Part shown: positions 54,501 through 57,500 of the stretch, piece after piece
Position numbering within the stretch: position 1 is the first letter of the stretch
How the letters are laid out: the number at the start of each line of letters is the position of its first letter
Assembly: GCA_002269645.1 (NCBI GenBank)
Contig: NIVC01000013.1
Location: 806,001-870,000, forward strand
Length of the DNA: 64,000 bases
Source: Macrostomum lignano
Taxonomy: Eukaryota
Direction: 5' to 3'
The notes under the pieces: generated by a model
What the model saw: the letters and a program-made list of their open reading frames with translations, nothing else
What the model was told of the DNA's origin: nothing
Database searches by the model: none
Made by a program: the position numbers and the translations under genes

Positions 54501-57500
54501 CCTCAGTGCAACAGGTGCAGCAACTCGCCATGAGGCAAGAACTCTCAGTTAAATTTATTCTCTAATCACAGCCCAAGTTTGCTGCGGTATTCAAAGTAAA
54601 TTAAATACGGTAAGCATGGTATAGGTTCTTTATCTGAACTTTCTCTGGTAAGTCCTGTGGTAAAGGTCATACGGAACGGTCGCTCGAGAAGCTAATAAAA
54701 ACGTATATCTTTAATGCCTCATCTCATAGGTAAAAGGTCATTAAAATAAAATTTACTGTTATAAAGTCTATTTGCGAGTAGAGTAGTGGATCACTTTCAA
54801 GTGGAGACAGCTAAATCTTTCAAGATAAAATCTTTGCAGCAGTACACTTTGCTCAAAGAGTTAAAGAGAATCAAGTGGTGCTAACTAATAGGAGCGCAGA
54901 TAAAAGCCAGAGAGAAAGAACTTGAGAGATATTCAGAGGGTTGCCCACTAAGCAGCAGAGAGGGAATAAGATCTCGACAGTCGATGAGTTTCTGCCGGAG
55001 ACAGGATTGATTTATTGGGTCTGCCTTGGGGGGAGAGGAGAGGTCGACGGCGAAAGAGTGTCAGCTACAGGGGCGTTCGGGCACTCAGTACGGGTTAAAA
55101 CGCCGGAGAGCGCTTACTTTCGCATCGCGTTACCCAACGAGGCGTCATCCTCGCCAGTCATGAGGGAGCCGGCCTCGTCGCCTTGGGCCAGCGCCAGCAT
55201 GTTTCGATTCTCCTTTATCAGAGACTGCGCGTCTGAGAAGCTGATCCGACTGGAAGTGTAACAAAAGATTGACTTGGTTAATCATGTAGTGGCTACAGAA
55301 ATCAATGTCTCTGCTAGACGGTATTTTTCAAATTAACGCTTGTCCATTGTTATTCGTTTATGAGTAAAATTGGCAACCAAAGATACAAGTGTTTCGCGCG
55401 CGCCGAAACTATGTTCAGGGTGAACAGCGGCCCTGACTTTCTAATCATCAGGAGTGTACACTCTCTGTGGCTTGGGAGGTTGGCCATCATGGCTGTGAAT
55501 CACGACAACCTATCAGCCAATTCTCGTGCACACAAAAGTCCCAAATGAATATGAATAGATCTGCATCCCTTTCCTCACCTGGCATTGTCCTCTTGATCCT
55601 CTCCGGCCGCTCCGGGGCGCATCGGGGGCACCGGATAGTCGAATTCGTCCTGTCTCCAGTCGCCAATTTGCGAGTCGGGCGAATAGTAATTGATCTCAAA
55701 GTCCAGCGTTGCCTGTGAAGTTAAATAATCAAGAAAAAAGAATTCAAAACGCAGACGGACTTTTGTCTGGAGATCGGCAAAGGCAAGTCAAACGGGTGCA
55801 TTCAAATAGATCATGTACGAGTATAAGCGCACTTGTCAATGCTTTAGCTGCATGGCCATTCATGGTAATTTTGTCTGACAAGCGTTATCCCATATCAGAT
55901 TCCGCCACTCCCCTGAGGGGAGGAGATATCAGTCGAGAAACACATCGCTCGATTCTTTCCCAAGCTCGGTTTCCCGCCAAACCGAAGCCAACACACGGTT
56001 TGATCGCATTAGACTACCGACAGAGAAATGGTTTCAACTGGAGACTTATGAAGCCAAGAAAAGATGACAAGCTGGCAGCAACGGAAGTCAAGGCTGCAAG
56101 CCTTTTGAAAGAGCATATATTGAACGGAGAGAAAGCAACAAGCGGACTAAATGCTGTCAAGGAGCCTCCTGAGATTAGGAGAATGTCTTCCAGGGTGAGA
56201 CTGCCGGGAGGGGTTAAAAATTACAGACTGATTTGTCTTCCTGGCGCTCAGAAAAGAATTCATTTGGCTTCTGAATATATTTCTCTCTTGTTTTCTACCC
56301 GCGGCAGAAAACTAAAAGAAGAAGAATGATAAGAAGACAGCGAAGAGCGGGCTGGCAGAGACATTTAGAGCTTTCAAGCGATGGGAGCCGAGCATGGATA
56401 AAAAATGGGGAGAGAAAGTTAAGAGGGGGGAGGGGCAACCAGCAGACGAAAGGGAAGTGGCTCTCATTTCCCGAGAGCTTTCCTCCGGCGCCGGGACGCG
56501 GCCCCAGCTTCCCCCAGATTTTTCCCTGCTCGCCCCTCAGGCTGGGAGAGCGACGGCGCCGGGAGAATTTTCAGACGGACCGAACAGGAATTGGAAAAGA
56601 ATGAAGAAAGGAGGAAGCGAGGGCAGAGAAGATTGGAAAAGAAAGAGATAGGATGACAAGACCAGTATGCAGTTTCAGCCAGTGTGCATTTCTTTATTCG
56701 CAGCCGGAGCCCTCTATCTGGGGAGGAGCACTCTGTAACCGTTTATGCATCATTTGCGTTGTGTGCACTGTAAGCTGGAAGAATTCCAACACGCCACTTG
56801 AGCAATTTAGCCATACCGCCCCATGGCACCCGCCGAACTCTTACCCGCATAGTGGAGTGATTAGCGTCGATGAGCTGTTCGCGCAGTTTCAGGCTGCTCT
56901 CGTGCACCAACTGCTGTAGGCTGATGGTCAGCGAGCCGATCATTCTAGGAAATAGGACGAGGCGATGGCGAGAGTTTTTAGTATATTGGATTGCAAAGTA
57001 CACTTAGATACACTTAGAGAAAGTACACAAAGCGTCTCCAACCCTTAAAACAAATTCCCAAATTCGACTGTTGGAGTCTGGGCTTTTTCAAATGCCTGTG
57101 TCTCGACTAAATTTTCTCACTTGTTGGCAAGATATTTCGAGAAATTGTAGACTCGAATCTCCAGCACATCCGTGATCTCGATGCGTCGGCCCACGGGCCA
57201 TTTGAATTGTTGGCCAAAATAGACAGAGTCTCGGCCGGAAGCGGCGTTGGAGGTTTGCACATTATCTGCAACGGAGATAGATATTTGCGATGGGATTGTA
57301 GACACCTTAACCAACGCAACGCCTTTGGCACCACAAACAGTGCTGAGGCAATCCCCGTTCCGTTGACTCCTGAACACATACTGTACACACTGTAAACTGT
57401 ACGCAAGCACGCGCTCATACACACGCTCACACAGAGTGTACAGCGGCCCTGGCTTTCTAATCGTCAGACATGTACACTCTCTGTGGCTTGGGGGTTGGCC

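Follow-up and report, generated by a model that had tools for sequence, protein, structure and literature searches.

The repeat family described in this study can be compared with several known systems. Short interspersed elements (SINEs) with a conserved central domain (CORE-, V-, Deu- and Meta-SINEs) are, as generally described, also short non-coding dispersed repeats in which the middle is best conserved and 5'-truncated copies occur, and a partner reverse transcriptase plausibly makes use of their RNA structure, as we propose here. HINE/DINE-1-like elements and Helitron ends are likewise non-autonomous and hairpin-bearing, show no obvious target-site duplication and are prone to internal arrays. 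The hammerhead repeats of flatworms and other animals (Schistosoma Sm-alpha, retrozymes, and the pseudo-long terminal repeats, or pLTRs, of Penelope-like elements) share with it a flatworm host, a short structured repeat that is sometimes tandem, and the letters CUGANGA/GAAA on one strand, and one of the copies studied here recalls the minisatellite arrays that derive from transposons. Repeats account for over half the genome of the flatworm Macrostomum lignano, and our study deals with one of them, flagged at positions 55416-55546 of a 64-kb window (the whole stretch of DNA that was analyzed; contig NIVC01000013.1, assembly GCA_002269645.1).

We tentatively regard the flagged repeat as an uncatalogued family of non-coding, non-autonomous mobile elements of M. 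lignano that is RNA-mediated and whose source copies are selected for their fold. Its core is rich in hairpins and appears to retain its fold on one of the strands, and compensatory change within the helices is modestly above neutral expectation. The family is of a familiar kind: structured cores or ends are expected of non-autonomous elements, and no new mechanism is involved. Masking and gene models in this model organism for regeneration would benefit from its definition, which would also offer a case for testing RNA-level constraint on a mobile element of flatworms. Our literature search returned nothing on this element, and searches with sequence strings gave only an unrelated match; exact-pattern scans of metagenome, viral and prokaryotic genome collections gave 16 matches, all of them due to chance and without likeness outside the pattern. 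The M. lignano repeat library excluded unclassified models as well as those under 200 bp (PMC5730564), so the family is probably unannotated.

Copies and anatomy of the repeat

The comparison set consisted of the window and a 45.6-kb M. lignano locus around a ferlin paralogue (L018), 110 kb in total. Seven independent copies were identified in it, A, B, C, D and G in the window and E and F in L018 (Table 1), and they are the basis of all family-level statistics; neither nhmmer --max nor the covariance model R1 found further copies in the 110 kb. The resulting density of about one copy per 16 kb is biased upward, since the window was picked for holding the element. A 19-mer of the nested hairpin, CTGACTTTCTAATCGTCAG, has 8 matches with up to three mismatches where 0.01 are expected, and a 15-mer of the right hairpin arm, TGTACACTCTCTGTG, has 14 where 1.6 are expected. 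Copy-to-copy matches reach E values of 1e-12 to 1e-35 in BLAST and nhmmer, with 70-87% identity over 80-170 nt; both orientations are present and the flanks are unique. The four loci of the preliminary description (1-111, 33130-33245 on the minus strand, 55416-55546 and 57419-57972) are all present where it placed them, although it overlooked a fifth window copy, G, and the full element is longer than the extent it gave.

Full-length copies measure about 250-270 bp and comprise a head of about 95 nt, a conserved core of about 105 nt and a diverged tail. B and E (254 and 268 bp) can be aligned from about GATAATATT..GAGGGYTGYGGGCAC to ..CGAGRYTTAGA; their head of about 95 nt carries ..CGCGATATCGTC..GCGCTGAG.. 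and is followed by the core and then the tail. The head upstream and the tail downstream are common to B, D and E; the head of D is of the B/E type with an insertion and an additional TGTACACACTG motif at 57382, and a short tail follows its array. Conservation is far higher in the core than in head or tail, to the point that BLAST detects the core alone in most copy pairs. Two copies are 5'-truncated, C beginning within the left hairpin arm and G at domain 2. B sits in an intron of a ferlin-like gene, in sense orientation.

The core is built of five helices, H1 to H5. H1 pairs CACA-C-AGAGTGTACA with TGTACACTCT-C-TGTG over 14 bp with one C/C mismatch, which becomes a C-G pair in B, and its loop holds H2, a 5-bp hairpin of the form CTGAC-TTTCTAATC-GTCAG. 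After a linker of 5-6 nt comes domain 2, in which the 7-bp outer stem H3 (GGGGTTG/CAACCCC) encloses H4 (GCCC-TCAT-GGGT) and H5 ((T)GCG-AAT-CGC(A)). The core is constructed around an 11-nt motif, TGTACAC(N)CTG, present three to four times per copy in direct and inverted orientation, and these occurrences make up H1 with H2 enclosed in it; the motif recurs in the head of D at the position given above, with degenerate forms in heads (GGGCACCCTG) and tails (GTGCACA).

H1, H2 and H3 are kept in nearly all copies that retain those segments. In B, H1 is intact without the bulge, and H2 and the outer stem are present. The sequence does contain the stems quoted in the preliminary description for A, C and D, and C and D have the three-way junction as their minimum-free-energy fold. 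As for its long hairpin of domain 1, only B, E, F and D (in its first unit) possess the left arm; C has a degenerate version, A has lost it to the cut, and array units 2-6 of D lack it. The outer stem of its "three-stem junction" does persist through sequence change, but H4 and H5 hold in only three of the six copies with a homologous domain 2 (A, C and D). E and G break both inner stems and form GGAT-GTGA-ATCC instead, and B has lost the second one by a 14-nt deletion. Two further details of that description had to be corrected. Its 5-bp stem "tgcga/tcgca" would leave a loop of 1 nt and is actually a stem of 3-4 bp with an AAU loop, the T being shared with "gggt"; and gcca/tggc in C versus gccc/gggt in D is not covariation, as C is shifted in register by one and the pairs do not occupy the same columns.

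Possible maintenance of the fold

The repeat folds more stably than its shuffled versions, with z values of -3.3 (core of D), -3.9 (core of B), -2.7 (full-length E) and -4.7 (full-length B). Alignment A5 comprises 107 columns and was curated by hand with the structure known, each row being checked against the sequence; 88.4% of its 198 cells are standard pairs. Five pairs are changed on both sides, compared with 2.0±1.0 when columns are shuffled (five attained in 2 of 500) and 0-2 in slid registers. We also used a neutral star simulation, which starts from the consensus and applies each copy's own substitution number with the observed transition share. Six compensatory cells are observed versus 1.6±1.2 simulated (P = 0.0036), and the pairs kept amount to 87.2% versus 81.8±2.3% simulated (P = 0.012). 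Individual pairs illustrate these changes: pair 4/59 of H1, an A-U, is U-A in F; pair 68/106 of H3 occurs as G-C (D), G·U (E) and A-U (C), pair 77/82 of H4 as C-G (D, E), U·G (G) and U-A (A), and pair 87/95 of H5 as C-G (first unit of D), U·G (array unit 3) and U-A (C, A). Cells with G·U outnumber those with A·C by 23 to 3, corresponding to about 11 versus 3 independent events (one-sided binomial, about 0.03), and this excess points to the plus strand and to RNA over DNA. The earlier claim that the structure is under selection holds in part, in that the main helices are better kept than neutral decay predicts (P about 0.004 for compensatory cells); the covariation of the three stems had been overstated.

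It is important to consider that several observations weigh against a maintained fold. There are only seven independent copies, and the alignment was curated with the structure in view. Substitution rates are alike in paired (13.3%) and unpaired (14.8%) columns, RNAalifold applied to A5 retains H2 and H3 alone, and the inner stems H4/H5 are broken in E, G and B. There is, in addition, a mild excess of C-to-T changes on the plus strand, which could raise the G·U count without selection. The equal rates, the lost inner stems and the RNAalifold result would all be expected if no selection acted on the fold, the palindromes being inherited from duplication of the motif and the compensatory changes being due to chance, to alignment freedom or to template switching in inverted repeats. 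The same explanation can draw on the inner stem of C, re-registered rather than covarying, on the weakness of two of the six compensatory cells (the G·U in H4 of B and an isolated outer pair in A), and on the fact that kinship between sequences can by itself exceed a shuffle control. We consider it unlikely: it has to accommodate the two simulation results (P = 0.004 and 0.012), the far lower counts in slid registers, the asymmetry between G·U and A·C, and the clearly higher conservation of the core, relative to head and tail, when B is compared with E.

A further pairing may link the head to the core. The head segment AGGGCTGCGG of E is complementary at 10 of 10 positions to CCGCGGCCCT in the H1 loop, just 5' of H2, the partners being AGGGCUGCGG in the head and CCGCGGCCCU in the H1 loop; only 0.12% of shuffled heads reach this complementarity. 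B keeps 9 of 10 pairs in the same register, with four of them as G·U and one changed from C-G to U-A. RNAfold favors in E a helix between head and left arm over H1, and E's head nearly repeats, in inverted form, the left arm together with the linker that follows it. On the basis of these two sequences, the pairing could be a pseudoknot with H1, a competing conformer or another trace of motif duplication. That the core and this pairing together form a new kind of functional RNA module of a flatworm retroelement, for example a SINE central domain, a recognition fold for reverse transcriptase, a conformational switch or a self-processing RNA, strikes us as a long shot.

The kind of mobile element

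The element is probably RNA-mediated, because its wobble pairs are strand-biased, G-C, G·U and A-U intermediates occur at the same pairs, copies are truncated on the 5' side and the core is well kept. The fold would act in the single-stranded form of the plus strand, most likely in the element's transcript, and might be a module for stability or for recognition by an autonomous partner's enzyme, as in pairs of SINEs and long interspersed elements (LINEs). Source copies would retain their helices along paths from G-C through G·U to A-U, and inserted copies would decay later.

The difference from the SINEs with a conserved domain lies at the ends: no tRNA-, 5S- or 7SL-like head and no A or B boxes were detected here, and the repeat has neither an A-rich or simple-repeat tail nor a clear target-site duplication. 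ARAGORN found no tRNA genes in the window, and the tRNA, 5S and signal recognition particle models of Rfam (E<=10) gave no match to the heads of B and E; an origin of the head from 5S or 7SL, suggested by the resemblances CGATATCGTC and GCGCTGAGG, was rejected as unsupported by Rfam. A B-box-like sequence, GGTTGCGAATCC, occurs only in domain 2 of G (window 45997-46008) and corresponds to the tRNA B-box/T-arm consensus GGTTCGAATCC with one inserted G. E has GGATGTGAATCC and D has GGGTGCGAATCG, and no tRNA model matches; the sequence in G may be a product of chance or a very old tRNA-derived remnant. In the scan for target-site duplications of at least 8 nt at a plausible boundary none was found. 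The sole candidate, TTTCAGAA at B, was noticed by eye and is marginal, and the 8-mer CATTATCT that the scan gave for D is some 600 nt downstream and was put down to chance. The 3' ends are inconsistent between copies, and the ends were judged from three full-length copies that are 70% alike. Since a SINE-like head, an A-rich tail, a clear duplication and a nearby partner element are all missing, retroposition is something that we infer. Two other observations also count against an RNA-mediated element: a T4 run within the tail is awkward for a transcript of RNA polymerase III, in which it would act as a terminator, and a motif of 11 nt in both orientations suits protein-binding sites on DNA as well.

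This last observation leads to an element that acts at the DNA level, either MITE-like (that is, resembling miniature inverted-repeat transposable elements) or of the Helitron/Helentron type, in which single-stranded DNA hairpins or the motifs would be sites for a transposase or Rep protein, the intermediate would be DNA and arrays would be a frequent by-product. The repeated motif, direct and inverted three to four times per copy and again in the head of D, would suit it, as would the near inverted repetition of left arm and linker in the head of E, the missing target-site duplication (expected for Helitrons) and the internal tandem array in one copy; single-stranded DNA hairpins predict compensatory change equally well. 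We nevertheless rate this alternative as rather unlikely. The hairpin is central and not subterminal or near the 3' end as in HINE and Helitron ends; no terminal inverted repeats (TIRs) were found and, as far as three full-length copies show, no recognizable TC...CTRR termini; many G·T against few A·C favor RNA, as G·T is poorly tolerated in DNA stems; and the truncations are on the 5' side. In B and E the search for TIRs gave nothing beyond matches of 9-14 nt at chance level.

Two more specific assignments were rejected. A MITE is opposed by the lack of TIRs and of a duplication, and C and D, which lie 1.7 kb apart in direct orientation, are not a pair of long terminal repeats (LTRs) or a terminal-repeat retrotransposon in miniature (TRIM), as C has no head and the tails differ. 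No coding partner came to light either. Six-frame translation of the element gave no protein match, the open reading frames (ORFs) neighboring the copies contain no Pfam domains, and no ORF for a reverse transcriptase, transposase or Rep/helicase was found in the 110 kb; the check proposed in the preliminary description, for a Penelope-type reverse transcriptase or RepHel ORF beside the element, revealed none nearby. Its assignment of the repeat to the cis-acting part of a mobile element is still the most economical reading, whereas the choice it offered between Penelope and Helitron/HINE is beyond 110 kb of sequence.

Ribozyme and small RNA readings

The preliminary description noted the letters of a hammerhead core on the opposite strand, without an in-register cleavage triplet, and named a ribozyme among its possibilities. 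We rejected the hammerhead: CUGACGA-UUA-GAAA has no helix II, only UUA lying between the core boxes, and there is neither a cleavage triplet nor a hammerhead match in Rfam. The letters appear because the 3' arm, loop and 5' arm of H2 are read backwards on the minus strand. These are the same points in which the repeat differs from the hammerhead repeats of flatworms and other animals, together with the lack of LTR-like direct repeats around an internal region and of an adjacent reverse transcriptase. The suggested link to retrozymes and Penelope pLTRs likewise failed, the flanks of all copies being unique and the ORFs between and around C and D having no Pfam domain. Rfam gave no match at the gathering threshold in the whole window, which includes A, and scans at E<=10 of the B, C, D, E and G regions returned no ribozyme, tRNA or small nuclear RNA (snRNA), only noise (Mico1, SNORD73, sR58, STnc290). 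A reading like the hepatitis delta virus ribozyme, considered by eye only, was discarded as its putative P3 loop has just 3 nt, and no resemblance to twister, pistol or hatchet was seen, again by eye only. The ribozyme idea, which would have made the element exciting, is unsupported.

The copies could also be small structured non-coding RNA genes and their pseudogenes, similar to snRNA or spliced leader (SL) RNA or belonging to a new self-processing RNA, with the head as promoter and with an Sm-like site and a terminal hairpin in the tail. In A and B, AAUUUUG/AAUUUUCG (AATTTTG in the DNA of A's tail) indeed precedes a 5-bp hairpin that is not the same in sequence in both (UCCCA/UGGGA, in DNA TCCCA/TGGGA, in A and GCCGC/GCGGC in B), an AT-rich, TATA-like ATAAATATT stands at the 5' similarity limit of B, D and E, and the folds are strong. 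We judge this reading improbable: Rfam has no match, C and E carry mutations in the Sm-like site and C, G and E lack the hairpin, the hammerhead core is not formed, and the copies, with a divergence of 13-30%, are truncated and lie in introns in both orientations, like relics of transposons. An Sm-class snRNA gene was rejected for the same reasons, the Sm-like run with its 3' hairpin being limited to A and B and unmatched in Rfam. The known SL RNA of M. lignano is a 109-nt gene with a 35-nt leader (PMC8629364); this leader was seen in no copy, and the known SL RNA gene is a different one, so the SL RNA reading was also dropped.

The tandem array in copy D

The locus 57419-57972 is a single copy in which an internal segment of 87-88 bp has been amplified six times (6.0 copies, period 87, 97% matches, score 992 in TRF). 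The unit spans from just before H2 to just after H3 with CCCT microhomology at the joins, and units 2-6 are without the left arm because the unit, joined at CCCT, starts just before H2. Head-to-tail units are found at this locus alone, the other six copies being single. The array is best explained by ordinary slippage or unequal exchange at CCCT, like ten other minisatellites of the window. It resembles transposon-derived minisatellite arrays in consisting of six units of an internal piece of the element, in its 4-nt microhomology joins and in its minisatellite-rich region, and differs from them in that one of seven copies is amplified and the family is mainly dispersed, not a satellite. Long ORFs of up to 128 aa remain open through the array (57436-58073) as by-products of the repeat; no homologues of them were found among 5.8 billion proteins.

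Table 1. Positions of the repeat copies, their parts and the minisatellites (window coordinates unless L018 is given).
Feature	Position	Strand	Description
Copy A	1..113	+	cut by window start; H2, right arm, domain 2 with 4-bp outer stem, tail; 65.8 bits (5' cut)
Copy B	33075..33328	-	full length; head 33328-33249, core 33248-33125, tail to ..CGAGATTTAGA; fold z = -4.7
Copy G	45982..46049	+	5'-truncated; domain 2 (inner stems decayed) and tail only; E = 3e-11
Copy C, flagged locus	55416..55549	+	5'-truncated in left arm; nested hairpin, right arm, domain 2, tail ..AATTCTCGTGCACACAAAAGTCCCAAAT; cmsearch 85.8 bits
C, nested hairpin H2	55433..55451	+	CTGAC-TTTCTAATC-ATCAG; minus-strand reading gives the letters CUGAUGA..GAAA
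C, right arm of long hairpin H1	55455..55469	+	TGTACACTCTCTGTG; partner arm 55416-55426 degenerate
C, domain 2	55476..55512	+	outer stem GAGGTTG/CAACCTA encloses GCCA-TCA-TGGC and (T)GTG-AAT-CAC(G)
Copy D	57276..58024	+	head 57276-57425, first core unit 57426-57528, tail 57973-58024; 95.4 bits
D, tandem array	57447..57972	+	six 87-88 bp units (H2, right arm, domain 2), CCCT junctions
Copy E	L018 35323-35056	-	full length
Copy F	L018 ~24790-24960		different sequence replaces domain 2
Sm-like site and hairpin, A	88-121	+	
Sm-like site and hairpin, B	33144-33110	-	
Head-loop pairing, E (approximate)	L018:35303-35312 with 35203-35212		
Head-loop pairing, B (approximate)	33298-33307 with 33207-33216		
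Minisatellites	3017-3847, 4925-5481, 5866-5924, 6562-7103, 7952-9355, 11337-12039, 48011-48496, 61164-62149, 62890-63686		

Other features of the window

The window is rich in minisatellites of 8-25 bp. An unusually dense set of minisatellites, with periods of 4-32 bp and up to 175 copies, lies mostly in introns and intergenic DNA around a Cys-loop receptor gene. Several of them give long spurious ORFs, and (GACT)n at 11337-12039 is the reverse complement of (CAGACAGT)n at 5866-5924. Nested inverted repeats occupy 23249-24137 (23326/23717, 23467/23600, 23533/23787 and 23249/24095), with arms of 43-71 nt that are 84-94% complementary, and a separate palindrome with 68-nt arms lies at 30597-30804; both are foldback- or MITE-like and unrelated to the repeat family. 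Large exons of an otoferlin-like ferlin extend over 32298-43596 on the minus strand. The closest proteins found to it are an annotated M. lignano paralogue with 52% identity and an M. lignano entry present only in UniRef with 70%, so this gene copy may lack a GenBank model. The window also contains an ORF of 706 aa with LRR and TIR domains that is 100% identical to BOX15_Mlig030947g1 of M. lignano.

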